Shown here: piece after piece, positions 20,626 to 63,668 of the stretch | Layout: each line of letters starts with the position of its first letter | How positions within the stretch are numbered: position 1 is the stretch's first letter | Assembly (NCBI GenBank): GCA_964035545.1 | Contig: OZ037768.1 | Coordinates: forward strand, 8,402,741-8,466,740 | Length of the DNA: 64,000 nt | Reading direction: 5' to 3' | Source of the DNA: Bugula neritina | Lineage: Eukaryota > Animalia > Bryozoa | The notes under the pieces: model-generated | The model's input: the letters and a program-made list of their open reading frames with translations, nothing else | Told to the model about the DNA's origin: nothing | The model's database searches: none | Position numbers and translations under genes: made by a program

Positions 20626-41807
<21,182 letters not shown>

Positions 41808-42997
41808 TCCCCATTAAACTTTGTATACTTACCTGGTCATTGTTGTATTTCAGTGATGAATATTTTGATTATTTTACTACCAGAATTTTTGTCTAGAATA
41901 TATATATTTGAATTAGTTGCATTTTTTATGATAATTATATGAATGAAAATAGGAGCTGTAAAGCTATTCTCAATCTTCAAACAAGATTGAAAATAATTTT
42001 ATTTTGTTCTAAGATTTTATAAGGAGATTCCTTTATTTTATTAATAGATGCAATCAAATTTTCTCATTCTAGAACATGCCACTGCAATATTTTTATATAA
42101 CATTTGCCATACCCATTATTTATTAGTACATAATAAATAATATTATGCTGTTATAATCTCCTCTGCTATCTTTATTCGGTGCAACACAACATGTTTTACT
42201 ATATAATTTGTCAACAAAATTGTGTGTTTTTTATTTATATAAAAAAGAGAGGTAATACACTTATTCAAAAGATATATTCATTCTTGCTCAACACAACGAC
42301 CACAGCTGCAATCATATTAGAAAAAATATAGTATATCTTTATAATATATAAGTTTTTTTGTAAGAATACATATCATTATTTCTTTGTGACATGTTAAATT
42401 TTAGGCTCATCTTATGTTAATGCATTAATTAATATACAGCATGTGATTCAGGTTTTGTATTGGGCTAATCTAGTTTTTCAGCGATGATAAGCAGTTGCAC
42501 CAATAGATTATTGTATACCCAGCACAGATAGAATGTATTATAGAATATCAGAAGATATCATTTCCAAGTTTAGTTTCTGTATTCCGTAGTTTCAAAGACT
42601 TTTCCATTTAAAACATACCTTCATCACAGTTTGTTGGTGCACGCCTGGTGCAATACATGCAAACCTTCATTTGGTTATCGCAAGGCTTATAATTAAGTTA
42701 GTCTAATTACAATTCTGAAAAAGAGTTTCAATCATTTATTATAAAATGGGCTATAAATAACCAAACTAAAATAAAGTTACTTTAATAACTTTTGAGTTAA
42801 TTATTAGTGATAAATTTGATTTAAGGGGTCATCTTTATTTAAAATTATAGCACAAATTCATCGTTACAGCAAGCAGTTGTCCTACCTAATGGGAATACAC
42901 GTTTTGAGCATTATTATAATATTATAACAACATAGTAATGGTGACTAGTAACAATTCAGAGTCTATAGCGATGATGAAACACGAGGAAGCATTAAGC

Positions 42998-45900
42998 TTA
43001 AAGGTTAAAGTTTTGTTTCGCTGACTTATGCGATCTCAGTGTGGTAGCGGGGTGAGAGTGCGCTGACGCCTGGTCTACCACATAGACAGGTTGGACTGCA
43101 TGGTTGGGGTGAACTCTCTGCACATACTGCACTCCTGATGCTTGGTCGTCATCTATCATGTAGGCTTTCTTGGCTACCTTTTCAGATGCTACAACACACG
43201 GCATTCAACACTTATATAGTTTTCAACACTTATATAGTATTCAACACTTGCATTATATTCAACACCCACACAGCAATACTATTACAATAGTGGTTATGGC
43301 ATAGTAAAAATATAATATCACAGCATATTACATATCATATTGAAATGAGTTCTTTTTAATAGAACAAACATAATATTATATAGTATAGTAAATATGTGTA
43401 ACAATCGACTTATACAAATATTGTCAGATTGCATGCAAACTGAAGCCACAAAAGTAATTCAGATATAACAAAATACTTGTGAATGTACTGTGCAGTGTAT
43501 TATACGTTGTACAGTATGTATTCAAATAGTGTTCTGGCAAATTTAGATACCATGGTAATAGCTGCTACGTAATGTTATCTTCTATGGCTTCACCATGGTA
43601 AATAATCAAAATCTATGAGGCATGCTGCAAATACTTCATTCGATGCGCAGTTGCTAATGGCAACAGTGGTGATATAATTTGCTGTACTGTAGAATATATT
43701 GTAGATTTTGACAAAAATTGTAACTTTTGGTAAAAAATATAATAAAAAAGCATTGCATAGTTGTTTCTATTTATTATTTATTCTTATATATATGGCTTCT
43801 TGTTATTGATGTTAAAAACTGTTTCATGTACTCATGTGATGGACACTGGTGTTTTTTCTCAGGCCAGTGACATGGTTATACATACACAACTTACATTGCC
43901 AAGGCAGAAGTTTAACTTGTCTGTAAGCAAGAACAAACGCAAGTATTGCCAATACAATTGCGTCAAATATGCTGATGATGGCCAGGTAGTAGGTCCACTG
44001 GATGTAGCATTTGCCAGAGACGTATGAGTCAGACTGACAAAGTTGCTGCACAACATCTGCACTCCATCCTCCCGGGTAAATCACACACGCCAGAAACATA
44101 AACAACGCTGCAATGGAAGCACGACAAAAGTAAATTTTCAGAAAATTGATAAAAAAGTAATCGACTGAAAAAAAATTATACTATTTTCAGCTATAGATGC
44201 TAAATATATGATATGTATTCTAGCCAAAGTAATTAAGTTAGTAGTTATATAATATTATATATACATATATAGCATCTTTACAATAAATAATAGTTGCTAG
44301 ATGCCTCACTCACTCAAACATGGATAATCAGTATAGGTGCATGAAGTCAAGTATTGTTATTCACTATTTCTATTATAATAGAATATATTATTTCGCATAT
44401 CTTCCAGACTACAAATCTATAATATTTTATATTTGAGTGTTATGTAAGATAATGCTTTTAAAGCACAAGTATGAAGTATCCAAAACTACTATTACAAGGG
44501 AGTCATACTGCCCTGTAGTGTTTTATATGTAAAGTAAACAGAGAGTAGCCTGTGTACAAATAAAAATTCAATACATTGCAAACAACCTTTCCTCTGTACT
44601 AAGTAGCTATACAGCTAGTCTGTGCTACCAAAATACAAAGTCTGAGAACTAAAATTCTATTAGATTTTAATAAAACTGGGTGCATTGCAAAATATTCAAA
44701 GCTTAAGCAATTGATGCTGTTTATAGGGTGTTATAATGCTTTGCTAAGCAAAACTTTATGCAGTTCTAACATGGCAGAAATCTAAAAACATAACGAAAAT
44801 AATTTATTCTTGTCAGCCTTTGTTAGGCAACAAAAGTGATTCATTGATGCAGAAAATAGTTCATGCTTAGTAACTGCATCACCTTTGTAATCCCGCACCT
44901 ATGGGTAGTTTGGTGTAGTATTACTTATAGATATGATCAACCTTTCTATAGTTGGGTTTGTACTTGTTACATCACTATAAGTAGGTTTTTGTCACTGAAA
45001 AGTAGGAATGTTCATTGGCAAACAAAATGAAGCCTTAAATTTGCAATGTAGCTGCTTTTAGAGGTTACTTTTAAAACTCTATTAGCTAAACACAAGCATA
45101 TAAAAACAGTCGATTAAATCTAAAAAATGTCATTTCATCCAATGCAACTATGATGTATATATGCTTCTACATACGTAATAATGGCATATAGAATGTAAAA
45201 TAATAAATCCTTTTATTTATGATTCAAGTATACTGGGATTTTTGTTACTCAAATTCACACAGATATCATGATTTTCATTTTTCTTTCTTTAGAATTTAAT
45301 TAAAATAATTATGCTTTACCCTTTAAGTTTTTATTTATTTACTTTCTTGTTTAAATTGTCTTTTTTTCAGGATCTGGCAATTAATTTTATTTTCAAAATG
45401 CAGTGTTCAATAATTAAATTAGAAGAATATTGTGCAGGTAAAATAACTTCACTTTTTAAGCCCTGTGTCAGCAATCATCATGTTAAAGAAATGGCCTTCT
45501 TATCTTTGCTGGTATACACTCAAGTTAATGGAGCTTTTTCAACTGTTTAATTGTTGCAATTTAGAAAAATCATTAAAGTTTAGCTTACCATTAAATACAA
45601 GGATCCAGCCGCATATGATGAACACAATCTTGTGTGAGACACACATAAAGAGGAAGAAGCAGAAGACGCAGATAATAGTCAGCAAAACTGTCAATCCAAC
45701 AAATATAGTTGCGGCTTGAAAGGAGGCTGACGGGATCTGAGCCAGATCCAGAAATTGTCCTCTCTCTATGATTTGGTTGTCTTCGTTAATGTAGTATCGC
45801 CATAGACCAAAGTATCCTTGGCCAGGGGCATCTCTCTGCGTGCCCAACCACGTAGGTTGTATCAAACAGACCAGAGCTATGATCAGGAAGCACAGCACCA

Positions 45901-46006
45901 GCACAGCCCACATTACAGCAATAGCTCTGCTGTAAGTAACATACTTTGAGTGATAGTATTTTACTCTTTCATCTCCTGTCTCCGGTTTGCTGTTATTTTT
46001 ACCCAT
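42998..46006 (-). CDS. LHFPL/TMHS-family tetraspan membrane protein (LHFPL3/4/5-like)
   Basis: Exons 46006-45589, 44107-43895, 43188-42998, phases consistent. Motifs SRAIAVMWAV, QPTWLG, GYFGLWRY, IPSASFQAATIFVG, VFIICGW, IYPGGW..VQQLC, YVSGKCYIQWTYYLAIISIFDA; four hydrophobic segments. Confidence 0.92.
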
Positions 46007-46507
46007 TCTTGCTCAGTTTAAACAATGATTTGAAATAACTCAACTAAATTATACCACGAATTCAGTCTGTACAGAGTCAGGTTTGCTGATTCTAGTTCTC
46101 AGGTAGCAACTTTTGTACTGTAAGTATTGATTCATGCGACACAATAGTCTTATCCGTATAATCTTATTCTGCATTGAGAACCAAAGCTCCGCCCATTTTA
46201 ATTTGTTGTCCAAACAAGTCTCAATGTAGGTGAATACAACTTCTAATTACAAACAGGAACTACTGATATACTTATATTTAAATTGTCCATAAGCCAGAAT
46301 TTTAGAATGCAACCAGTTTTAAAGTCATGTAACCTAAAATCTAAATTAATTGTATATAACCTTTAGAGGCAGTTTTTAATGAAAAGTGAATTAAAGTTAT
46401 ACTGAGTTTCTGAGTTTTATAAATAGTTGCAACCACTAAGCTGTAAAACTTGGATAATATTATTGAGTTCATTGGCTGCAACTTTGTGGACAAAGAAAAA
46501 AACGGTT

Positions 46508-47000
46508 TCATCCCAGTTAGACACTTCCCACTTGGGCACTTCTCACTTGGACACTTCCTAATTAGACGCTTCCCAGTTGGACACTATTTTTTATTTTGGT
46601 ACAATATATATAGTAATACTAATGTACCTATAATATATACCTGTATAACTATTGTATTGATTGCTAAACATAAAATAATAGTTAATATAAATTGTTTGGA
46701 ATAATATTCCAATTTTCATGGATTTGTGTGGGACAAAAAAAGCAGTGCATTGTCTTTTATCAATACTTCTTATTGAAATATAATTTTTTTCAAACAACAA
46801 GAAGTATAAAAAAAGCAAAATTGATAAGTTAATGCAGATCAAAGGAATTTATTTATGTGCTAAATAACAAATAATTGATCCAAATTTATTTAAATATACA
46901 TATATTTCAATAATACTCAGATAAATTGCACATAAAATACATATATTGTATCAAAATAAATAAATAGCGTCTATAACTGGGAAGCGTCCATATGGGATGA
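46508..47000. mobile_element. Non-autonomous DNA element (MITE/foldback-like) with inverted arrays of 15-bp subterminal repeats
   Basis: Left: tca plus five units tcccagttggacact-like (46511-46585) plus attt. Right end in reverse complement: tca tcccatatggacgct tcccagttatagacgct attt (46962-47000). AT-rich interior. Confidence 0.7.
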
Positions 47001-50000
47001 CAGAATAGAAACTAGAAGGCAGTTTTTGTGAAGCATTTTTTTCATTAAAAATGAATTGAGTTTGTTTACTCAAGCTTATTGTAAGACACTAGCTAAAATA
47101 TTTTTATTGATTAATATTACTAAAGATTTGCTGTGTTTTATCAACATATTGCAGTGCAGCCGATAGGAGAGCTTTTTATGAATAAATGGCTCTGTAAACT
47201 ATAATTCTAGATTACTTGAGCTGGGTAATAGTGACTTCATTAATTATTATTTCTCACTACCCAAACGATGCATAAGTAAAGGGAAGATAACTCTTATTTT
47301 CTATTACTCAACTGTACTGAACATTTTGCTAATCCCATACGTTGGTTTAATGATTACCACACTACTATCAGAGTCATATATTTAAGCTTTACATAAAGCA
47401 AACATTTTTTTGTTGCCTGCAGTCTAAAAACTAACATATATTCATAAAAAATGTTTAGACATAGAAAATTTCATTTTGAAGAAGAAACTCAGAATGTCAA
47501 AATAAATGATATACAATCTGAACTTGAACTTAACTTGACCTAAAGAATGACTCATTTTGAAAATGAAAAGAAAATTACTATAATATGATGGCAAACAGAG
47601 GATCGTTAGTGTTCAGCATAATAATAGTAGTGTCAGAAGGCTTGAGAATGTTAATAGAAGTATACCACCTTATTTTAAATTTAGCCAAGCTGACTAAGTA
47701 TCAACAAATATTATTGTAGAATAATCTAATTAGATCAAATACTTGTCTAAGTACCTTATAGCTACAATTTTTTATATTTACTTATAATCTATTAATTTTG
47801 TTTTGCTATCTGTATCATATTATATATTTCTAATAATTTAATTTCTCTTTGCACTTAACATAGTAATTTAACAAAATAATTATAATGATTTTCATCTAGT
47901 ATGGGCTTTTGCAATGTATATTATGAAACTAACCATCCATTATTAAATTTGGAGTTTTGATGAATGTATGTTTTAATAGTTTAATGTAATATTATACTAT
48001 TTGTTGCAGACCTTTCTTTCAAATAAATTGTTCCACTAATTGGAATTATATTGTGATACGAATAAACAGCAGCATTCTAACAAATAAAATTATGACTGTA
48101 ATTGCGTAATAAATTAAGCATTACTTAAAAAGTCAATTTCTTTTGAGGATCCATCAACAGTTCATAAAATGCATTTTCTATTAACAGTTTGGAGTTGTGT
48201 GTTCAACTCTTGCACTGCACCTGCTGACAGGTGTTAAATGCATAATGACTACAAATACGTATTGAACGATGACTAATGGTTTATGCAATTCTGATATGTA
48301 AGCTATAATGTAGTTAACCAAAATTATTTATCTATTTGCTATAAAAATCAAAACATTACATCCTCATGTGATTATTTACACCGCTGTAGCCTATGGAAAT
48401 CTAATATCTCAGGTAGTGCAATACAATGTTTAAAAAATGAGGTTTGGTTTGTGGAAATTTCCACCAGACTTTCCAAAGAACAACTTTGCACTTTTTACAC
48501 CTATTAAGTGTAACTGCAGCTGGTGCTTTTCAGTCATCGCACTGACTAAACACCCTTTGATTTGTATCAGGTGAATACAAATTGGGTTTGAGAACGACTT
48601 ATGATCTAGCTTGCCAACACAATTAGTCTTGTGCTTTCAATCCTCATTAGTTACAAAGAATACAGGTTAGAAATACAATACTGCTAAATTTTGCTTACAT
48701 TGTAAAATAATCAAAGCATAAATTAACTTTTATCTCCTAATGTGGATGCTTCTTTATAAATGCATTACCACACAAAATAATAGCAAGATAACTTATTGAT
48801 GTGGAACACATTTTGTTTAGTTCTTTTGTCATTTTATTGTGAGCTTTACTATTATTATTTCATATAGCTGTACACCAGCCTGGCTATAGCAGCTTCTAGT
48901 GTTTAACTTACTGTCAAACCCCTAAATGGACATTATAATAGTAATTAGCTCTACAACTAGCATTGTAGCTATAAATTGATTATTATACAAACTCTGTTTT
49001 GAAATAAAGTCATGTAACATGAAAATACGCCAATAATCTGAAGCAACTGTTGTTGATGTGGCAGCTTATATTACATCAACAATAGAAACTGAGTGACTTT
49101 ATGCTCTAAATACAAATTAGCATTAAACTCCATAATTATTTCGCAAAGCAAATAAATATTAGGGACTTTAAGTGCAATATTTTATTCTGTAACTTCCTAG
49201 CAATAAATAATTCATACATAACCCAGTGGGAATGTTGACAAAAAGTCAGGTTTCAAAACAAACTATATTACATTGTGTATTAGTCATCATTTAATACACT
49301 ATTGCTAATATAACAATATCAACATGTCAAGGAAATAGTACTATTTTAGGGCAATAGTGAAACTTAGGCCTGTTTTACACCAGCTTAGTGACTTATTTCT
49401 GCACTGGTTGAATTGTATTTAGCATAATGTAGTCATATATTTACTTCTTGATAAGTGTTTAAACTTGAGTGTTGACAAATATTTTTAATTAAGTTGTGTG
49501 AATAAATAACACTAATAATTAGTATAGTATGCTACACCTTAATTACTTTTGATTCTATATGCTGTTGATTACAACTAATACAATATAACGAAGTATATTA
49601 GATAATAGTATATGTACAAGCTGGCTTCATTTTACTTCAATTCGATCAGGCTTGACTTCCATTTCAATTGTTGCTAAGAAAGTTGTCTAACATTATTATG
49701 ATTCACTTCGATATTTGGAAGAACTAAATGATCATCTTTTGTAAATCGTACATAAAAGAAAGCCTTCTATACTCTGCATGAATCATGATGTATAAAAACC
49801 ACAAAGTGTACTGATAAAGTGTTTTTAGCTATAGGTACAATGTTGTCATAGATAACACCCTTTACATGGATTCTCTGGCATATTCTATAGATCCTACGTC
49901 TGGGAAAGTTCAAGGTGCCGTGTCACTCTCTCTCATCATCACCGTGGAAACACAAAGTAGTGAACTTTGTTGCACCTAAACCCTTCTAGCAGTAATACTG

Positions 50001-51657
50001 TTAATTACTTGATACATGAGAGCTGGTCCTCTTTACTTGGCAACTTCAATACTCAAGTTTGTTTACCAAACAAGTTGACAATTGCTTGAATTTTCAACTT
50101 CAATTACCCATAGGAAATGGTATATGGAACTTACAGAATCAATTAAACTCTATCTTGAAAAGTTTACGGATTTGTAATTTATGCATATATGGTAGATTTC
50201 AATTATATTGGAAGAACATTGACATGACATTTCCTAAACATGACAATCACATTTATTCTAATTATATTCCTATCACTCTATAAATAGATCAGCTTAAGAA
50301 CTTTTTGCAGGTTGGTAGGTTTTTTTTCATAGAAATCCTACTAATGCAAGTTGAAGTCCGCATTATACACTTTTTATGTTTTTATACTAAATGGCACACC
50401 CATAATTTACTTGCCAGAATTTGTAAAAGCCAAATAGAAGCAGTGTAAACGCTGGGTTGCTATTTTCTATTTTATGTAACAGAATTTTGGCTGGCTTTAT
50501 GCATATTATTTCTAAAATATTGTTAGATGTTAAATATTAAATCTACATAACAATGCATAACAATGCAAACTCGATCCGTGATACTAACTAAAGGATTAAA
50601 TTATATATTAAAGTGTGCCTAGCAATGTATCAAAAGCTTTGCATTGCTCTAAAAAGCCCTAGTAAATTATATTAATGTTTGTTGAAATAGCTTATTATAC
50701 TTAAGTTTATTCTAAGTTTTTACAAATACTCTGCGTGAATTTATTGATATGACAAAGACCAGAAAATTCATCCCCTCAGTTGCTGTCGCATAGCTGTCAG
50801 CTGTCTTTTCAAGCATAGTAAATTAATCAACAAACTACTAAAATAAGTTTTTCAAAAGTGAAAGTGCAACTTTTTAGGAAAAACTTGATTAATGTAATTC
50901 ACTTTCTATGGCAACCAGCAACCATAGCCAAGGCACAAGTGGATCCTAAAATTATAACCTGAAGGCTGTATCTATATTTTATTTATTACTCTGCTGTGAT
51001 AAAGGCATGTAATCACATCTTAATACTAACACTTGAATGTTTCTAATATCATTCAACACATAATGTGATTATTGTGAATTTCATTCCTTTGTATTTATTT
51101 AAGATGACACAACAAAATAGACCGTTACAAATGAGTACATATATAAATTTACACTCACTGGAATTTTGTATTTTCACCAATAGATTTTACTTATAATATA
51201 CCCATCTCTCTATAATTATCATACTGCAACTTTAAGTGATTATATCATTTAATTTTGACACTTGCAATTATGAATCGTGTTCCAAAAATCACATTGGCCA
51301 GTTGCATTATGAGTAGTTTGTGTTTAGGTGTTGCAATAGAGTGTATGATTATGATTGCACCATCAATAGGCAAAACCATATCGTTTCCTTCCTTGAGTAT
51401 TATATCATTGGCTCAAAGTTAGTAAACCTTATTCTAAGGATATAATGATACGTATACAGTATATGCTTTTGTCACTCCAATTCAAATTAAATTACTGGCA
51501 TGACTAATAGCAGTATGGAAATGAAAACTGACTGCATTGGAAGAATAAATTTTCCCATTTAAAAGTGGAACAGACTGAAGGAAGCAATTCATCATACAAG
51601 TGAAATAAAAGAGTTTTAATCACTACTCTGAGTAATTATTGATCATTTGTTTGTCTT

Positions 51658-51671
51658 GTTGTCATAGCAAC
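51658..51671. promoter_or_regulatory. Candidate RFX X-box
   Basis: GTTGTCATAGCAAC fits the GTHNYYATRRNAAC consensus; related sites at 43650-43664, 49842-49856, 50902-50915. Confidence 0.45.
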
Positions 51672-54600
51672 CACGACTAGCTGTCACAAATACAATAGAA
51701 AATGGTTCTTTTGTGGTTTCTTCATTAAAATTAGAAAATTTAAGACCAGGTCATAAATCCATAGCCGTATAATGTAATTACTTTGTAATTTTGTCTATAA
51801 ATAAAATGTTACACTGACAACTTTCTATGAATATAAATTATTTTGTTACTGGCTTTAGCATAATAACAGATTAGGCATGATTTAAACAATATCACAACAC
51901 AGTAATTACATAAAGATATTATTTAAGTTGATTGATAAGGTGTTGCCTGTTAGTGTTAGAAATCTATTTTTATTATATTGTGAGTATAAATAGAGATAAT
52001 TATTTTGATTACTAATTTATTTTATGACCTACTTGTATTATCTTCGCTCAACAGTTTCAGATGAGTAGGACAATAGGGAAAAACTGTAGTACACCTCGAA
52101 TATGAATTTAGTAACACTTGAAGAGGCAATACTATCTCCATGGAGGAGAATTGTAATAATAACTGCTGCACTATACATAGTATATAGTATATACTATGTA
52201 GTATATACTATATTATATATCATATTTTATATATTATATATTATATAGTATATGGTATATAGTATATAGTATATAATATATGGTATTGCATTGGTAGTAT
52301 AACAAATAAAGATAATTGGGAAACAATATACTAATAAACAAAGAAAAATAAGTCATCTTTTCTAAAAAAAATTATGGAACACCTAAATTAGTAATGAACA
52401 TGACATTGTACACAGCTAGAGATTTCAAATTGCAAATAATTATATTGAAGAATTGAGAAGAAGATAAATTAGAATATCGGCAGCAATATGCACTAAACAG
52501 ATGCCGACCATTGAATTTAGAAAATAATAGACTATTAGTAACATATTATAATAGAATAAAAGTAAAGATGTTTGTAAAACTTGAAGCAAACAAGACTTAA
52601 ATAAACAAGAAAGCTTCTTCTCATAGAAATAATTTTAATAAGCAATTTTTTAAAAGCATTGAGTTTGTGGGTTTACTTCTTTCTTTAATTTATCCAACAT
52701 ATAGTAATAATATAATGCCTTGTAAATAAATACATTATAGCATAATATTATTCCAAAGTTTGATATATTGGGAATACTATAAGCTCCATGCTAAACTGAG
52801 ATGTGTTATTTAAGGTAGCAGTTTAGCATAGCATTCTTAACATCTTGCTGCAGAGGCTTAAAAAGAATTGCAAAAGTTAATTACCACTAAATAGGCAGTA
52901 GAAAAACTATTACTTGCTCATGGATAGCAGCTTTTGCCATTGGCTTTCCTGCAAAGTTTTTTGCCAACAGGAGCCAACAACTGGTTGATTTTTTACTATT
53001 TAACAAAATATTCCCTGGTGGTGCCAAAGTTTCCACATTTCTAAAGAAACAATAAAGAAGCTAAATTTTGCATTGTTTTGTAGCTCCCTTAGGGGTGCCC
53101 CCTACTAAGGTCTACAGTCAATATTTAGTGTAATTTTCCTCAAATTTTCCAACTTAATGTTTTCATCAGCAATTAGTCAACAAAAGTTTGTTTCCTCTCT
53201 TGAATCTTTTGCTACTACAAAGCAATAGCAAACCAAAAATAAACTTCTCCTTGTAAAGGGTTAATCAATATATGATGATGGAGGTTTTGTTCATTGTTGC
53301 TCCAGCAACGTAGCTTTAAATTAAAGGCTGATTTACAGCACATGAGTTTATACAGGTGAAATAATTTGTTTAGATAATCATTTTCATTAGAAAACATCAA
53401 CCCTACTTTGTTTTTTGCTGGTAATTGTTTCAAATAAAGCAAACAGAGATTCCTTTGAGTTTGTATAGGGAGGCTAGCAGTGTTATGGTACAAAACAGAT
53501 CGCCCTATCCAGATAACCTTTCAGGGCTAATTATGTAAATAAGCGTATTTTGCTGAAGTTGATTTCTTTGTTGTACCTTCAATAGACTGCAGTCACTTTA
53601 ATAAAACATCCAACTAAATGTATTATTATATTCAAGGCGATGCTATTATATATATAATTATTAGCTACCCTAGATGAGTAACTTGATCCGATGTAAAGAT
53701 TTTACTGCAACTAATAATATTATAATAGAGGTAGCTAGCTTGTGGTCTCGCTTCACTGCCTTCATCTCACAACTGTCAGGTGTTGGTGATGAATCACCCT
53801 GCCAACAGCTAACGTATACACAATAGACTCGAAGCTGAATCTATCATGATGGAATAATTACGCAGTAGACACCTATTTGCCCAAACACTAGGCTAATATT
53901 TTGGTGCCTAGATAATCTATGCTGCTATAAAGGCAATAAAACCTTTGATATAACGGCTTACCTCGTATGTATAGCCAATAGGCTTCTATCCTTTCTAACA
54001 AAGGCTGACTGATATAAAACTGTTTTTGGCATTGGTCCAAAACCGTTGCCAGATAATTATTATTTATTTTGACATGTTCCGTCTTTTGAAACATAAATGT
54101 GCAAAAAATATTGCCAGAGTGTCTTTTAAATGAATGTTTGCCAAAAAACACCAACAACAGTAGTATTTAGTCACGTGCTATATTCCTAATCTATGAGTAT
54201 ATTCTTAATAACTCTTTAATGTGGGTTAATGTCTTTTTTATTCATTATTGCAAATGTCCATGCAAATAGGAAGAGTAAGATAGCTCAAGTAGGAAGTATT
54301 GAGGTTAGCTGAATATGTTGTAATATTTCGGATGAGTGATATTTTAGCTCCAATATGATCTGTAGGATAATTCTGTCATATACGATAAGCATAACAAGCT
54401 AAGAAATTATCAATTAGATTGATACAATATTGATTGTACAGGATGTTACTTTACATATCATAAGCTAAAGTCACTGCCTAGTTCTAATGATAATAATATT
54501 AATGTCACTAGAAATGGCAAAAAATAATTTCTTTGCTATTTCTATCTGGCACATATCCTTGATGGAAATATTAGCTAAAAATAGTACGTTCTGCAAAATA

Positions 54601-55084
54601 ATAGTTTGATATTTCTCACTCAAACGAAAAATGTCCGAGGTGTATTTTTTGGGTTTGGCAGGCAACATTTACATATTTTCAGTTTTATAAATCTGGAAGA
54701 ATATCTATTATTAAGCATTATTTTCTTTATTACAGTTTTTATACACCACATGAAAGTACAGTTAATCTCGGGAAGGCTGTAACTCGAGAAAATGCCCCCA
54801 GCTGTACACAGCTGCACGCCTCATCTGCGACTACTTTGAAGGTGTTGCAATAGCTGGTATGACTAATATCTAGCTTAGTAATGATAATAATATTAACCTG
54901 AACAGATAAGCCTACACAGTATTAGCATTGGGGCCTACTGCCATAGTTCACGCTGTCTGTCTGTCTGTCTGTCTGTCTGTTGGTGGGTATTAATCATACA
55001 AGGGGATGTTTGACAGCACCTACTTAGTATTCTTATTTCTCTGTGATATTCACCACCAACCACTCTTCTCTGCTTACCCTCCTG

Positions 55085-55259
55085 TAAAAATTCACGTAAG
55101 TTTATAGCCACCATCCCTGTGAGAAACCCCCCCCCCCTGCTAAATCGGGCTAAGGACTCATTCAGATGGGACACAGGAGCACAGTGCTGTTCTTCCTGAC
55201 AGCACCAATGGCCATGACTCCGTGCTTACTAGGCAAATGCTCAAACCCTCAGACCACGG
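55085..55259 (-). mobile_element. tRNA-derived SINE, copy 3, internally deleted
   Basis: Shares ccctgtgagaaacccc, gggctaaggact, cacaggagca, caccaatggcc, ttactaggcaaa, accacgg with copy 2; lacks the B-box segment; diverged TSD ending accctcctgt. Confidence 0.85.
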
Positions 55260-58200
55260 CTGCTCTCTCTGTTCACCCTCCTGTCTCTGTGTTTATTCAT
55301 CTGGAATTACTAAGATTACCAAGTGACCTACAAATGATTGATGCAGACTATTTACTATATTTGACTCCTTGCATTGACATTGCTACGGCATGACAACAGA
55401 AAGTCATCACCTCTATTATTTGCTGATTAGTTACACAAACAGATCAATAAAATTATGGAATATTCTCATGATTTTCAGGTTCTCCAGGGATTCGGCTCAA
55501 TTGTCATTTTATTAAGTTGGGTTCATTATTGAAAATGGTGCTTGAGACAACCCTGAGAAAATTTATCATCCTTTCTTCTCCAATTACTCTTAAACAAAAA
55601 ACTATTGACATTAATCATTATTGGATTACACTGGCTCAATAATCTGCTGCTATTAAACTTTGTATAAAAATCATGTATTTGTTTACTTGTGTCTCAGCAT
55701 TGATATTGTTTGCAACTGGTTGAAACATTATTATAGGTTATAAATAGTTTTTTGGCAATAGGTCAATACTTTTGACTTCAATACACAAATGCATCATTGA
55801 ATACAATAATTTGTGGCATAGGCAATTATACAATGGCATTATTATATTTATTATTCCACCTTGACTTTACTTTCATTTTCAACTTAAAATGTTAACAAAT
55901 AATATAAATTAATAATAATGGCCAATAAGATAAAAGCTGTTGACATGTATTTATAATAATAAACAATGTTATATTAAAAACCAAGGCTGAAAGCAGGCTG
56001 TGGCCATTATTCTGCTTGGAGTTAATTATTTTGACTCTATAATTACAACCCGGGACATTATTAGTGTAGTTTCAATATAAGTTTATTAGTTTAACTTTGA
56101 AATAACTGCTTCATATTCAGTGCTAAGGCGAGTTCAACTTAGTAAAAGCCAAGGTTTAGCTAAACACTTTCCAGCTTATGACTCATGATTATTGATTTGC
56201 CCTTTCATAACTGTACGGCTCACAAAGGCTAATTAACAGCCATATAAACGTAATTGACAGAAAAAAAGTTGAACAATATCTTGGCTTTGATGTTACAGCT
56301 ATTAATTTGTTGCATAACAACAGAAAATTTGAAATGCAAGCGCTGCCGCTGCCCAAGCTCTAGTGTATGTCAATACTCATTCTTCCCAGGTGGCAGTTTA
56401 AGTCTACTGTACTGCTCATTCTGTCCCAATGCAACTGTCATGTCTGCTAACTTATCGTACTTGTTATCAGCTTATATGGCATATTATAGCAGGGATTAGA
56501 TATTTTCTAGAAACCATCATAACAATACAAGTCTCATGGACGCAGTAATTCTGGATATAGCATAGGTATATAAATAATATAGTACAAGTGTCTGGGGGGG
56601 GGGGGGGGGCTGAGTGCTACACCCCATCAATATCACTGCTTCTATATAATAAATCAGTAAAGCTGTAACTGCTTCTAATCATATACTTTACAGGGGTTTT
56701 CTATAGTCTACGCATTATCTTCCTATAATGCTATTAAACAGGTCATTAAAAATTCAGGGATAGCTGTTGCAGATCTTCCCACGGTTCAATAATTAGGCAG
56801 CATTATAACGCAGGTCCCAGTGGTGCCGTAATAGCACTAGAATCACTCTTTATATTTGTATATTGACTTATGATACGCTATTGAGATAATTAATTACTGA
56901 CTAGAAGTTGTAATTTCCCACAATTCTTATCTAAAATCAGCAAGAGTACTGTAAATCAGCAGCCTTAGTATGAGGCTGGCAGCATTAATTCCTCCAACAG
57001 GAAAGTTTTTAATTGTTCCGATACTAGTTCTCACAGATTGAACAAAACATACTGTGACTTAGAACAGTGAGCCTGATTAAACTCTAATTTCTATCCCCTA
57101 TCGCTTTAAAGTTTTAAAAATAGAGCTTTTTGATTCATGATTAAAGTTTGACAGTTGAAATTTAAATAATTTGCATGAGCGTGTTAAAGTAATTAAATAG
57201 GAAACGAGACTTGGTGACTGGCTTATAAGCTGTTTATCTATATTTCGTTATAGCAGACGTGTCACTTATCCCTTTATCTTCTTTTATGAAAAGTAAAATA
57301 CGTGTATGTTTGGGTTGACAGATACAAATGATATATAGCAGGTTGTAATGATTGTTATGTAACCCCATCCAGGGGCCGAAACAAACTCAGAACTTTACCT
57401 CATTACCATAGTGTGTGCTGGCTTATACTGTTTTAGATTATTATAATTATTATAATAAAATCTAAATAAGGGTCCAGTGTTAGTAATTAAAACAATTCGG
57501 CAGTTGAGGTGAATAATATGAATGTATTATATAATCTTTAGTTTGACTGTTGAAGCAAAGCAAAAGTTGAAACAATACAAATTATATTATTACTATTTGT
57601 ATTTAAAAAATATTATTATTTTGCAAGTAGCACTAGATATAAACTATAAAATAATTATAGTGTATTATGTTATATTACATTATGTTATATCATAATACAA
57701 GAAAATGACAACAGATTTTATGCTAAGTGTTATAATAATTTGATCTGTCATTAATTACAGTTCAACAGATTTTAGGGACTAATGTTTTGGCCCAGACAGG
57801 TATTGCATAGTAAGTACCTGCTATACAGCTTTGTATGATAGCGATGAGTCATCTTTTTATTACAGCAGATACCTTGTATTATTGTCAAAGCAGCAGATGG
57901 AGGGCCAGGAATGTTTATAAATTGTTGCAGAATGCATGATGTCAAATACATACAATATTTTAGTTTGGTTTTGAGATTATTGGTCACAATATTAACTTTA
58001 TCAAAACTAGCGCCTACTAATGAGGTTACTATTTATGAGGTATTTAATGTAGCCTTAATTAATTTTAAAATATTAACTTCTATTGTGATGCTAAAGTTTT
58101 TGTAAATATAGAATAACATTTGTGAAGACTAACAGTCACATTATTGAAAAATGTACATGCTATAAACCAAATTAAACTGATTGACTTCATATTGTAACAA

Positions 58201-59909
58201 TAACAGTCCAAAGATGGCCAACTGGAACTTTTAATAATGGTTTGAATTTTCATATTTTAGTAAAAAACAGAGCTATTTGTTACTTTTGGCTATAAATCAC
58301 AGTTCAATATCAAAGTTTTTCAAGTTTTGGAAAATCATACTTTACGTTGAGATATGCTGCATAATTGGAGTCCAAAAAGCAATTGCCTTGAACCAGTAGG
58401 CTTCATTTATGCAGAAAATATAGCAATATTTCCCTAAGGAGATTCCTTTGTTGTTTATATAAAATTTAACCGTCCTATTTGGCTTTAAGTTTTGCTGGAG
58501 TTAAGCAAAAGCACTGTAAACAAAGCTCTGTTGCTTTACTAAAATAAAAATAACATTTTCAAGGAATATGCTTACAAAATTTAGTAATCTGGAAGTTGCA
58601 TTTAAGAAATGTTGTTATATCTAATATACAGTTTTTGAGAAGACAAATGTATTTTAAGAGCTTTGCGGTATGCTACTGAGTGCTGAAAGAAACTCTTTAT
58701 GTTATCTGGTTATACCTGATGTGTAATGATGATGCAACTTGTAGGTAGCTACCCAAATAATATCTTCAACGTTTTAATCTTCACCTGAAGAATAAATGTT
58801 TTTGTTAAAAGGCACAGGTTGCCAATTACGAGTTGAAACTTTTTATTTATAACTGGCTATGTACTTATTGCCTCATAGTAATAGGTGCAATGAATCAACG
58901 TGCCACATTGTCCTCAACAAGAGATAAAGATCTCATTTTCCACCAACACTACTGCGACATACAACTGGATTATATAGCAGCTATTAGTGGTTTCTACCGC
59001 AACGTGGCTTGCTCTAATTAATATTAAGTGTATGTTAGTCTATTAAATAGATATAGGCTGATTTCATGAATCCAAATATCTTGAAAAACAGTTTTGGCTG
59101 CCAAAATCTGCGATACTGGCACTGGATTGCTATATATTTCTGATAATAATTTTATAAAAAAGTAATTAGTATTTTGTTGATATCACAAGGAAAATGAGAT
59201 ACTCAGCGCTATAGCTATCAGCATTAGATAAACAGCATTTTAATAATAGTAGTACCAGATGACATATTTATTGCTTTCTCAGTTTCAATTTATTTCACAG
59301 TATGGAGGCGGGTCAAGCAACTTTACATGTAAGATTTCAAATCTCAAATAAGTCAATCATTTCAATAATGACAAACTTCTGGTTCTGATTTAATACTGTA
59401 ATATCATACAGTATATGCCATAAAGCAGTATATGCCATATGGAGTATAATTATCCTATTTTGTAGTTTGCTATATTATTGTTCTTCAGACCAGACCATAC
59501 CCATCTAATTAACATAATAATGCACACGCATTGAAATTAAGCTGAAACCATGAGCAAGGTGTCAAAAGATATAATTATAGCATGAGGCTGGCCCCTGGAT
59601 CTAAGGGTACAGACTCATGTCTGATAGTGTTTGTTCTACTCTTTAGAACTATTGTAACAGATGAGCTTTTAATGTCTGCAACCACGACTAAACTCTTATA
59701 ATCTAGATAAGTTATCAGATCAGGAACAATGGAAAAGACAGTAAAACTTGTTTGGCTGCCATAATTTTTGTATCTATTTGTTATTTTTGTATACTGTATA
59801 ATATGAATATCCCTAATGCCATGCTTTAACTTAAATATAATATTCAAACTGCAAATACAATTATCTTGGGCAATTGTTCCTGCTTTTAATTATTTCTAAT
59901 AATTTTTTA

Positions 59910-59974
59910 AACACACAAAAAAATGCCTCATATTTATTTTGCTATTTCTATAATAACTATATAGATATTTTATT
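59910..59974 (-). promoter_or_regulatory. Candidate polyadenylation signal for the minus-strand BH3-only transcript
   Basis: Minus strand AATAAA (59974-59969), AATAAA (59938-59933), then TTTTTTTGTGTGTTT U/GU-rich downstream element. Confidence 0.5.
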
Positions 59975-60219
59975 ATAGTAACATAGACACACTCATCAAA
60001 TGAGTTTAGCACCTTCAATTGTTTTAATGGCTTCATAGAATATAAGATTAATATTGAATACTTAATTCATATAATAAAAGGGCAGTCTAACTGACTTATT
60101 GTCATAGCAGTAAGAAGAGTAAAGCTGTTCAACATAAAATAATAACATTTGTACACAACAACAACAATAACATAAATATTATATACATAAATATTAATAT
60201 ATTAATATCGTAATGAGAT

Positions 60220-60240
60220 TGAGATCAGTAGAAAACTGAT
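60220..60240 (-). promoter_or_regulatory. Extended bantam microRNA target site
   Basis: Plus strand TGAGATCA-GTA-GAAAACTGAT, so the minus strand pairs with bantam nt 1-8 and 13-22 (UGAGAUCAUUGUGAAAACUGAUU as recalled for lophotrochozoans). Confidence 0.65.
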
Positions 60241-63143
60241 AAAGTGAAAATAACACAATTTTAATTAAAGTAGTTTTTACAAATATAAACACTGTACTGA
60301 TGAAAAATATATTACAGCATATTGTTTAATAATATCAAATACAATATCTTTAAATACAAGACTTTAGTTGAGCTAAAAATAGTTGCAAGAAGTAATCTCT
60401 GGAACTGGATTGCTCAAACTGAGTTAAATAATTCAAATGATTGTAAAAAAAAGCAGTCCTTCAGCAATTCTGACTATGAATCTAAATGTATATATAAAAA
60501 AAACTTTGAATATGTTAGTCAATTTGAATACAGCTTTTAAGGCTAAGAACTGAATTGTTTGTTATTGCATGTTAATTCTCCTAGCCTTCTGGTGTGTATT
60601 GAATAGTATAACCAGAAGTTGAATATTGCAATAACTTGCAGTAGTTAAGTATTGCACTAGTCAATTTCACTGTGCCACTTTGACTATTGCTGCAAGTCCT
60701 TGTGAAATACGCCCAGCTGAATTTTATTAACTTCATGGCCATCTTTGGTCAAGAACTAGCAATTAGCCAACTATTAACTTGGATAAACCCTCTTTGCAGG
60801 AATGCATTTCTCAATCTAAAATATAAAAGGACAGTGGTTAGTACTATAATATTTTGCAGAGTCACCTGTTTATTCAAGCATTGTTACCTCAAATTCAAAG
60901 TTAATTGTTATCATATTGCAGTGTTTGTTGTTAGGATTATATAAATTAGATCAGCTACAGTTTTTAAAGTTGTCACTTGGTAACTTATATTTTCAGCTTT
61001 TATTAGATTTTGTGTCAATATTTTGCAATGTGAGATGCCTCCAAACTTAGCGAGTGTCACTAAATGATAAGAATAGTTTATATAAGTCAGGATTATTGTC
61101 ATAGATAGCAGCTTCGATTGTGCCAGCTTTGTTTCAATGCTGGCCTTGTGTTTTGTTTGTGGGTTGTGCTCTTAAAAAATACTAAAGGGTGTGGGATGTA
61201 AATGCAAGCAAATGGGTTTCTTTGTTATTAAAAGTTGGCTGTTGAACAAGCTAGGCAAAAAAGTCAATTATGGACATGAAACACCAACTTGCCTGAACTT
61301 GCCCAAAAAACTTAACCGTTATTGTTTAATACCTGGCTAGGAAGTTATGGCATGTGGTTAGCAGTTGGTGATGGCTATTCCATAGCTTCATGGCCACAAC
61401 TAGCAAATGTTGACTACCAAAACCTAAACTCATAAAAACACTGTGGTTTCTCGGTTCTTAGAGAAGTTGCTAGGGGTAATGTGAATGCACTTAAGAACCA
61501 CCTAGCAAGGCCAGTGCAAGTCTTCATAGTATTGACGTTTTGTTGTGACAGGAGAGTTTGCCTATTGCCAAAGAAGGTGAAGCAAGGGTCATGTTATATT
61601 TACTATGAACTTTATGACATCTGCTCTCTTATCAATCACCAATAGTGATACTTACTCATAGCTATAATATACTCCTGCATGTTTATGCTTTTTAGCTTGC
61701 ATAGCTGATATCAGTAGTTCTATTTTAGAACAATATACATATGATATAAACAAAGTAGTATTGTTATTTAATTACCTTTCTAGCCTGATTACTAGCCTAG
61801 TTAATTATAATAAATAGCACTATATGCATATCAAACTATATCAATATATTGAGCTATATTATAACAACTACAGTAAGTTTCTATGATTGATATACATGAA
61901 TACTGTTGATATCAGCGTAATACAATTATTACCTAGCTAGCTATACTACACGATGGGCTTAATGAGTCACTGTTACAACTCAGAAGGTCATAGTCATGTG
62001 GAACTATTAGTAACCTTAGTGACCTTATATTATATAAAGTGTGAACTAAGCCACTGAATAATTAATTTAGAACCAGGAAAGTAACATTAAGTGTGCAACA
62101 CTTCCTAGTTGAAAACTCCCATAGAAATAAAGCATAGAAAAAGAAAGTCACTGAGTGCAATATAATAATATAGTCTGCAAGTAGACTCTAGTTTGTCATA
62201 ACGTGTTGTTTTATAAAGTTGCAGGGGCAGGTGAATAGAGAAGAATTAACAGCTGATTAAATCTACATCACTAACACATCACTTAGATATCTGTTGATAG
62301 TAAGATGCACCTATTAACACCATGTGGACAAACAATAGCAACCGTGATGTAACGCAGCACTAGCTGTGGCCTGGTACAATAGCAATAAACACAGACTCAG
62401 CGATGGTGGACAGTTACAGCATGAGGAGTGCACTCAGCACCCTAACCTTTTATTAGACAAGCTGTTGGCATGACTACGTCAACTTCTCATGACTGTTTTA
62501 TTAAAGCTTTTATAGCACTATGTATCAATATTTTAAGTTCAATTTTAATATTATTATTAATATTAATAAGCAAATAAAAACAGCATTTTGCATTTTTGAA
62601 GGCAGTTGAAGGGAAATTTTGCAAAAACTCGTTTTTAAATTAAAAATGGTGTAAAATAGTATGTTTTATTTTGAGAATTTCAGCCCACATTCTGAACCAA
62701 AATCTATAAACCAATTGAAATTTCTTCACTACCACATGTTCATTACAGAAAATAACTGGTTTTGCACTTACTAATAATATACTATAACAAACACACTAAT
62801 AGCTATACTATATTATATGCCTGTAGTATACTACACTGTGCTATATTGACCTGTTTTACTTCTTACTCTCACCTTTAACACACCCAACCCAAAATTTGAT
62901 AATAAAATTAAAGAACTTAGGCTATCTCAATCTCTCCACTACTGCTCCTTATAAATGCCTGATCTAGTGTCTTTTGCAAACCTTACAGATACAGGCTTTA
63001 TCAGTTTTTATTTTGCATATTCAATATTGGTTATTACTACAAAAACCAAACAAGTTTCAAATACAGCTGCATTTTATAGCAACAGATATTTATATAAAGT
63101 GTACTTACTTGAGATTCCATTTAAGTTGCACTCATCTCCTTCC

Positions 63144-63431
63144 TTATTCAATTAAAACATCGACTGTTAAAGCTATTCCTATACAAATGGCTGAGCAGAG
63201 CAGTACAGTTTTTAGCTCACTGAAAATTATATTTTGCTGATCAAATAAATCACGACGTCGTCGTTGCTGTTCGTCCAACGTATCTGCAACTATTTGCAAC
63301 TTGTTGCCAATGGCTTTGTACTGATCGTCTGGATTCGCCAGCCTGGGTGGCATCCCATTCTCCTCAATGTAAGGCATGTCAATAATGATTACTCGCAATG
63401 ACTCATATGGATCTGTAACTTGTCTGCACAT
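63144..63431 (-). CDS. Candidate BH3-only pro-apoptotic BCL-2 family protein with C-terminal membrane anchor
   Basis: 95-aa ORF, GC-richer than flanks. BH3 motif YKAIGNKLQIVADTLDEQQRRRR (I41,G42,L45,V48,A49,D50,L52) and hydrophobic tail TVLLCSAICIGIALTVDVLIE; no BH1/BH2 (no NWGR). Start could be M1, M19 or an upstream exon. Confidence 0.72.
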   Translation of the reverse strand: MCRQVTDPYESLRVIIIDMPYIEENGMPPRLANPDDQYKAIGNKLQIVADTLDEQQRRRRDLFDQQNIIFSELKTVLLCSAICIGIALTVDVLIE

Positions 63432-63576
63432 TATATTTAAAACCTGATGTTCTTATAAATATGCAGCGAAATGATGCTTAGTAAAAAGTTCGTTATTGTA
63501 AAGGTGATATCAGTTAGAATGCTAAATGTAATGTGTTGCCATCCCACCCTATTCGTGGTATTCATAGCCCGCTATA

Positions 63577-63668
63577 ACCACGTGGTCACGCTGTATCTGT
63601 ACGACTAGTTTTATGAAACAGCTGATTGGGAGGCGGAGCTTGTTTATGATGAGCAATAATAGTAAACA
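63577..63668 (-). promoter_or_regulatory. Candidate proximal promoter of the BH3-only gene
   Basis: Palindromic E-box ACCACGTGGT (63577-63586), CCAAT on minus strand (63625-63629), GC box (63628-63638), forkhead motifs TTGTTTAT (63640-63647) and GTAAACA (63662-63668), in a locally CpG-containing patch. Confidence 0.5.

Follow-up and report, generated by a model that had tools for sequence, protein, structure and literature searches.

A candidate tail-anchored BH3-only protein in the bryozoan Bugula neritina, encoded on a spliced mRNA with bantam and miR-92 family sites

BH3-only proteins of other animals and the Bugula candidate

The vertebrate proteins BIK and HRK are small and carry a BH3 motif followed by a C-terminal hydrophobic anchor; in HRK, which has about 91 aa, an Arg-rich stretch lies between the BH3 and the tail. 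Among protostomes other than nematodes, the BH3-only proteins of Schistosoma and Sayonara of Drosophila are among the few cases with experimental support (PMC7022251, PMC10107002), and prediction of BH3 motifs in silico is notoriously error-prone (PMC10107002). By 2017 oyster had yielded no BH3-only protein and none was on record for molluscs (PMC5550854). Seed searches between lineages recovered none across protostome branches (PMC8998228), and bryozoans are absent from a 2024 survey of apoptosis in lophotrochozoans, which dealt with multi-motif BCL-2 proteins (PMC11463336). Our literature searches returned no work combining BH3-only proteins, bantam and protostomes, and no related publication among the ten best matches for Bugula, apoptosis and Bcl-2. 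Some BH3-only genes are controlled by microRNAs. In C. elegans, egl-1 is repressed through a miR-58/bantam site (PMC5322734). Mouse Bim has two miR-92 sites among the dominant AGO2 sites (PMC6942046), and the BCL2L11 mRNA is a TDMD trigger against the anti-apoptotic miR-221/222, which strengthens killing by BIM (PMC8653786).

We have analysed a window of 64,000 nucleotides (C4:8402741-8466740) within the 216-Mb genome of Bugula neritina, which contains a 95-codon ORF (Table 1). We read its product, with a probability of about 0.77, as a canonical-type, tail-anchored BH3-only apoptosis initiator of a bryozoan; that is, a well-supported new candidate of a known class, in a phylum for which we found none described. 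By analogy, the candidate is BIK/HRK-like at the protein level and BIM/egl-1-like at the mRNA level. With BIK and HRK it shares small size and the order of BH3 and anchor, but no sequence homology, and since BIK is restricted to vertebrates (PMC10107002) the likeness to it is an analogy. Like EGL-1 it would be a short protostome BH3-only protein with a bantam-family site in the 3' UTR, although no homology was detected between them, EGL-1 acts by releasing CED-4 from CED-9 while Bugula has BAX- and BAK-like genes, and the second regulator is miR-92 in Bugula and miR-35 for egl-1. Moreover, the consulted part of PMC5322734 reports no extended 3' pairing for the egl-1 site, whereas the Bugula site has 10 3' pairs. 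The BIM (BCL2L11) mRNA resembles that of the candidate in having several miR-92 sites (PMC6942046) together with extended pairing, but there is no protein homology, the extended site in Bugula is for bantam instead of miR-221/222, and TDMD is there a prediction. The Schistosoma proteins and Sayonara gave no similarity to the candidate in our searches, and Sayonara, a coiled-coil member of PTHR21974, is larger than it and has a motif specific to flies.

Table 1 Features of the candidate gene and its mRNA (positions in the window)
Feature	Position	Strand	Basis
CDS, 95 aa, candidate BH3-only protein	63144..63431	-	EB796_002428 in GCA_010799875.2
BH3 motif, residues 41-53	63273..63311	-	sequence; helical in model, pLDDT about 90
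Arg run R57-R60, after BH3	63252..63263	-	sequence
Predicted hydrophobic tail anchor, residues 76-94, acidic C-end	63150..63206	-	KD 19-residue mean 2.58
Exon 1 (5' UTR, entire ORF, 35 nt of 3' UTR; 5' end is a minimum)	63109..63557	-	contigs of 4 runs
GT-AG intron, 2,293 nt, begins 35 nt past stop codon	60816..63108	-	junction in 4/4 runs
Exon 2, non-coding 3' UTR	59969..60815	-	contigs read to at least 60128; probable end after AATAAA
Upstream ORF, six codons, strong Kozak context	63522..63542	-	within longest RNA contig; present in both lineages
Promoter-like stretch	63579..63629	-	consensus matches alone; both motifs present in other lineage
Dispersed repeat copy, 67 nt, inside intron	62883-62949		match to high-copy repeat
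bantam site, 8mer seed match and 10 consecutive pairs to miRNA 3' end	60220..60240	-	duplex -23.2 kcal/mol
miR-92-family 8mer site	60650..60657	-	conserved in other lineage
miR-92-family 7mer-A1 site	60624..60630	-	conserved in other lineage
miR-92-family 7mer-A1 site	60563..60569	-	conserved in other lineage

Gene structure, expression and selection

The 95-codon ORF is a real gene of the Bugula neritina species complex. It was single-copy when the genome was searched with itself (no paralogue at E<=10), and the sole database relative of its product is the B. neritina hypothetical protein EB796_002428, which differs at 1 residue. The original prediction had placed the ORF and its motif correctly, but had taken the gene to be unannotated, which is not the case: the protein had already been predicted, without an assigned function. 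The assembly GCA_010799875.2 and four further contigs showed 89-94% identity to the window around the gene, indicating that they come from a diverged lineage of the same species complex.

RNA contigs from 4 runs belonging to 3 studies revealed a two-exon mRNA with the entire ORF in exon 1. They carry the alleles of the other lineage and show neither the level of expression nor the true transcript ends. One of them covers 63557-63109 and 60815-60128 in a single piece that starts in the 5' UTR and extends past the bantam site, and the probable end of exon 2 lies after an AATAAA at 59974-59969 (or 59938). In the same 4 runs the final intron of the Sel1-repeat gene upstream is removed as well, which shows that they represent spliced RNA and fixes the strand; among their contigs none bridges the Sel1 transcript and that of the candidate. 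An in-frame stop lies just ahead of eight codons leading into the ATG, the 5' UTR is contiguous past that stop, and none of the three frames of exon 2 stays open or is long, so the ORF is not an exon of a larger protein. Splicing into the ORF as a last exon, at AG sites near 63440 or 63411, disagrees with contigs that run unspliced to 63557 and was rejected, and a Met-Glu-Ser-Gln frame across the exon junction closes after 17 codons. Junction-dependent decay generally follows a 50-55 nt rule, and the exon junction, 35 nt past the stop, is too close to provoke it.

The short upstream ORF is kept in the other lineage despite three base changes (including a synonymous Ile codon and a TAG/TGA switch of the stop), and may place translation under stress control. 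Within the promoter-like stretch there are a CCAAT (63629-63625) and a CACGTG E-box (63584-63579). The 67-nt repeat in the intron has at least 40 scored copies with 88-95% identity, of 1,189 candidates, is found also in many RNA contigs, and is possibly the end of a MITE or SINE.

Between the two lineages the ORF showed 98.3% identity, with 5-6 substitutions, no indel and a single non-synonymous change (V48I), in comparison with 92-93% for the 5' UTR, intron, exon 2 and upstream DNA, the last three gapped. The dN (pN) was 0.0045 and the dS (pS) 0.065-0.081, a dN/dS of about 0.06-0.07 that derives from one diverged lineage, the two being too close to single out the BH3 from the rest; at the flanking rate, one non-synonymous change or fewer would be expected with P about 5e-6. 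The synonymous sites of the ORF evolve at the flanking rate, and constraint at the codon level together with this rate indicates that the protein itself is selected, so that the ORF is presumably translated. V48I is conservative and allowed at h3. Codons 1-35 had zero changes, which favours M1 over M19 or M27 as start, short of proof.

The same-strand Sel1-repeat gene ends about 950 nt ahead of the ATG; it was searched exon by exon, unjoined, as were the BCL-2 homologues described below. Further upstream there are an MSP-domain gene (head to head), a DHX16-like helicase, an RNF170-like gene and a citron-like kinase, the last three named by eye from their translations. Downstream (window 38600-46006) an LHFPL gene and an OSBP-related gene stand tail to tail, and the two are paired likewise in related animals. 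About 14 kb (46006-59900) without a recognisable gene separate LHFPL from the BH3 candidate, and here blocks of low divergence between lineages (0-2%) near 59400-59800, 56600-57000, 55400-55600 and 53600-53800 are candidate regulatory elements or unannotated exons.

The protein and its possible partners

All BH3 positions are filled in the candidate motif, by I41 (h1), G42, L45, V48 (h3), A49, D50, L52 (h4) and D53, giving the BH3-only signature of four hydrophobic positions, two small residues and the invariant Leu and Asp. The pattern is the same as in the BH3 of the BAK-like and BAX-like genes of this genome. The minimal LxxxA/G/S-D core, as in PMC10107002, appeared in 10% of shuffles and is uninformative. 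The full pattern of 12-13 residues, written as regular expressions of the consensus, appeared in 0.04-0.10% of 100,000 shuffles and, among the 201 ATG ORFs of at least 50 aa in 161 kb, only in the candidate. In 322,000 six-frame residues of the genome there were 4 occurrences: the candidate ORF, the BAX-like BH3, the BAK-like BH3 and one chance match outside any ATG ORF. A whole proteome is still expected to hold dozens of chance matches, so that the motif alone is insufficient; its weight is raised by the context, i.e. a protein of 95 aa with a Pro/acid-rich N-terminus of low model confidence, a helix, an Arg run and a hydrophobic end.

Residues 1-36 include 5 Pro and 7 Asp/Glu vs 3 Lys/Arg, with a hydrophobic patch at 12-17, and had a pLDDT of about 45-55 (45-54 over residues 1-30) in a single-sequence AlphaFold model. 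This model, for which no alignment was used, gave one continuous helix from 34 to 94 with a pTM of 0.35, which any amphipathic tail-anchored helix could give as well. The predicted anchor is the best 19-residue hydropathy window of the protein, and D91 and E95 make the C-end acidic. From its composition the tail probably inserts in a membrane, and the acidic end makes a preference for ER over mitochondria a reasonable expectation. The complete set of BH3 positions, the Pro/acidic N-terminus and the hydrophobic last ~20 residues without a basic tail were thus all as originally predicted. After the stop, and in frame (63143-63132, minus strand), the DNA encodes Gly-Arg-Arg followed by a second stop (the window has TGA and the other lineage TAA); its presence in both lineages means that an older or a read-through form could end in a basic tail, and the tripeptide could be a former C-terminus or belong to a read-through form, which would favour mitochondria.

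Searches for relatives returned only Bugula or nothing. A word search of 5.8 billion proteins gave Bugula matches alone, with no orthologue outside the B. neritina complex, and full HMMER against 1.84 billion representatives detected no homologue beyond Bugula, its sole other match, a repeat-rich protein of 1,786 aa (E 3e-4), being taken as chance. A back-translation scan of metagenomes found no non-Bugula homologue, PDB sequence searches with the whole protein and the BH3 region were empty or spurious, and Foldseek with the model gave no credible structural match. The whole-Pfam scan was empty at E<=10, including BH3-only families and SNAREs, and genome scans with the BMF and BIK profiles (PF15185 and PF12201) did not pick the locus. 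Homology to the named BH3-only families (BMF, BIK, PUMA, HRK, BIM, EGL-1) was therefore not detected by Pfam or profile scans, as expected given that the BH3-only class is polyphyletic (PMC10107002). The resemblance to BMF, PUMA and EGL-1 pointed out in the original prediction did not reappear as database matches and stays a proposed likeness.

Synteny was equally uninformative. Via the downstream LHFPL gene we reached three other animals, probably bryozoans, and of their contigs only one extends far upstream, where it carries a sulfatase; a 79-aa call on this contig was an antisense artefact. Exon 1 of the Sel1 gene led to a contig of 975 nt and to distant animals, none with the ORF. Short fast-evolving ORFs are easily missed or left uncalled, so these failed searches do not show that the gene is young.

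PXT1 is a protein that carries a BH3-like motif. In a feature search of the ESM Atlas (7.7 million clusters), which is blind to the hypothesis, four of the five best matches were BH3-bearing by name, namely BCL2L1 isoform X2 (rank 1), BIK (ranks 2 and 5) and PXT1, with scores of 0.77-0.80. Shuffled proteins often reach this range and a second query with residues 26-95 had no return, so we take the result as a lead only.

These data bear on the possibility that the gene encodes a real tail-anchored microprotein with a non-apoptotic job, such as a SNARE-like or coiled-coil membrane adaptor or an autophagy/ER factor, in which the BH3 match would be due to chance and the miRNA sites to growth control. 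The lack of any family match, a model consisting of a long helix and a tail, Atlas scores <0.9 and a chance rate of about 0.1% per 95 residues, enough for dozens of matches per proteome, are all compatible with it. However, far fewer than one chance match is expected among small tail-anchored proteins, no pocket position is left empty, the Atlas neighbours point in common to BH3 proteins, no SNARE profile matched, and the two miRNA families are the same that are known to repress egl-1 and Bim, and we consider this alternative unlikely.

A PF00452 profile search of the genome gave 24 matches (exon pieces). Among them are a BCL-xL/BCL-w-like gene at C4:4809881, in which BH1 (QWGR) retains the Arg partner of the BH3 Asp, another BCL-2-like gene (C5:9338436), a BAX-like gene and one whose BH3 is BAK-like. 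Groove-bearing partners and BAX/BAK-like effectors hence share the genome with the candidate, making a three-tier pathway possible. Many divergent BCL-2-fold exons were also found on C2, C3, C6 and C8, several of them in tandem on C3 and C8, which suggests a lineage-specific expansion of the family in Bugula.

If the candidate is a BH3-only initiator, a status that is decided by binding and killing, the steps can be drawn from the BCL-2 family. The tail would anchor the protein in the ER or the mitochondrial outer membrane and the BH3 would fold as a helix in the groove of the pro-survival homologue at C4:4809881, with I41, L45, V48 and L52 filling the four pockets and D50 salt-bridged to the BH1 Arg. 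Binding to the groove would free or activate BAX/BAK, leading to membrane permeabilisation and caspase activation, and in healthy cells miR-92 and bantam would keep the mRNA low. The original prediction of an apoptosis initiator is supported by these partners and by the expression, the purifying selection and the independence from any larger exon described above.

bantam and miR-92 family sites in the 3' UTR

The miRNA sites that had been put forward as independent support lie on the same mRNA, as one contig shows, and genes for bantam and for a miRNA with the miR-92 seed exist in the genome. In the bantam duplex, positions 1-8 and 13-22 of the miRNA are paired around a central loop of 3 nt vs 4 nt, and the site of the other lineage has a single difference, at an unpaired loop base. 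Outside the bantam gene itself this is the only extended site in the genome; as ~0.5 are expected genome-wide by chance its uniqueness is unremarkable, and the chance of finding one in this 0.9-kb UTR is about 1e-6. In metagenomes the extended pattern hit 77 loci, and no related ORF or UTR accompanied any of them. A single bantam hairpin is present in the genome (C5:3855576-3855655, Rfam E 5e-9, below the gathering score), with the ends of the mature miRNA set by the Rfam alignment rather than by small-RNA reads. The common lophotrochozoan form differs from Bugula bantam at the central position 11 (A in Bugula), a position that stays unpaired in the loop of the duplex.

Three 7-8mer miR-92 sites lie in exon 2 vs 0.3 expected (P 0.0014, for a family chosen post hoc, after seeing the UTR). 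A hairpin with the miR-92 seed was located by pattern search at C9:2907803, although the Rfam miR-92 model does not score it. None of the 40 paired positions of the sites differs between lineages, by itself P only about 0.1. A possible miR-137 site was discarded since it is not conserved in the other lineage, and there are conserved matches to the seeds of miR-9 (8mer at 60749-60742) and miR-1175 (63117-63111), both on the minus strand.

By the pairing criteria published for TDMD triggers (PMC8653786, PMC10102002), the bantam site has the seed at 2-8, more than 8 consecutive 3' pairs, a bulge within 1-6 nt, a non-coding location and a duplex energy below the cut-off of -16 kcal/mol. The genome also contains a ZSWIM4-8-family gene, not narrowed to ZSWIM8. 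The site probably serves mainly to silence the mRNA; that the induced mRNA would instead destroy bantam by TDMD we propose tentatively, at somewhat under even odds, because many sites with such pairing are not triggers. The TDMD papers examined describe no trigger for bantam, and in fly cell lines bantam is used as a control that does not respond to Dora. Joining both activities, the locus could be a protostome double death switch, its mRNA encoding a BH3-only killer and also destroying bantam, an anti-apoptotic miRNA, via ZSWIM8-dependent degradation, an idea that we regard as doubtful.

The pairing of this site, its uniqueness in the genome and the ZSWIM4-8-family gene would also fit an mRNA selected mainly as RNA, to trigger the degradation of bantam or act as a sponge for it, whose ORF would be minor or incidental, but the codon-level purifying selection, with synonymous sites evolving at the flanking rate, makes this very unlikely. 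Still slimmer are the chances that the gene is a remnant of a multi-domain BAX/BAK-like gene, keeping a BH3 helix and a tail anchor like BCL-xS-type products, and not an independently evolved BH3-only gene; a BH3-type mechanism would remain compatible and only origin and family would change. The motif and its N-flank (Ala-Ile-Gly before Leu) resemble the BAK-like BH3 of the genome and the top Atlas match was a short isoform of BCL2L1, but BH1, BH2 and BH4 are absent, the locus has no PF00452 match, the modelled structure is one helix without a BCL-2 fold, no paralogue exists at E<=10, and BH3 and tail are on one exon while in the multi-domain genes the tail has a separate exon. Finally, an ORF that arose by chance or forms an exon of some longer, unrelated gene, which the lack of homologues could suggest, is already largely refuted by the spliced mRNA in 3 studies, the closed frame upstream, the absence of an open frame in exon 2, the separate transcript of the Sel1-repeat gene and the dN/dS.

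Bryozoan zooids undergo repeated degeneration and regrowth of the polypide, which would be a natural setting for a BH3-only death switch. The candidate bears on the question of BH3-only initiators in lophotrochozoans beyond flatworms and is concrete and cheaply testable, its named partners being encoded by the same genome. It yields, in addition, a search recipe that does not depend on homology: a small ORF, a BH3, a tail anchor and bantam/miR-92 sites. If the double switch were true, it would parallel BIM and miR-221/222 in a different branch of animals and, together with egl-1, suggest that bantam control of a BH3-only gene is an old protostome circuit, and that bantam and miR-92 sites could help to locate the BH3-only genes still missing from molluscs, annelids and brachiopods.
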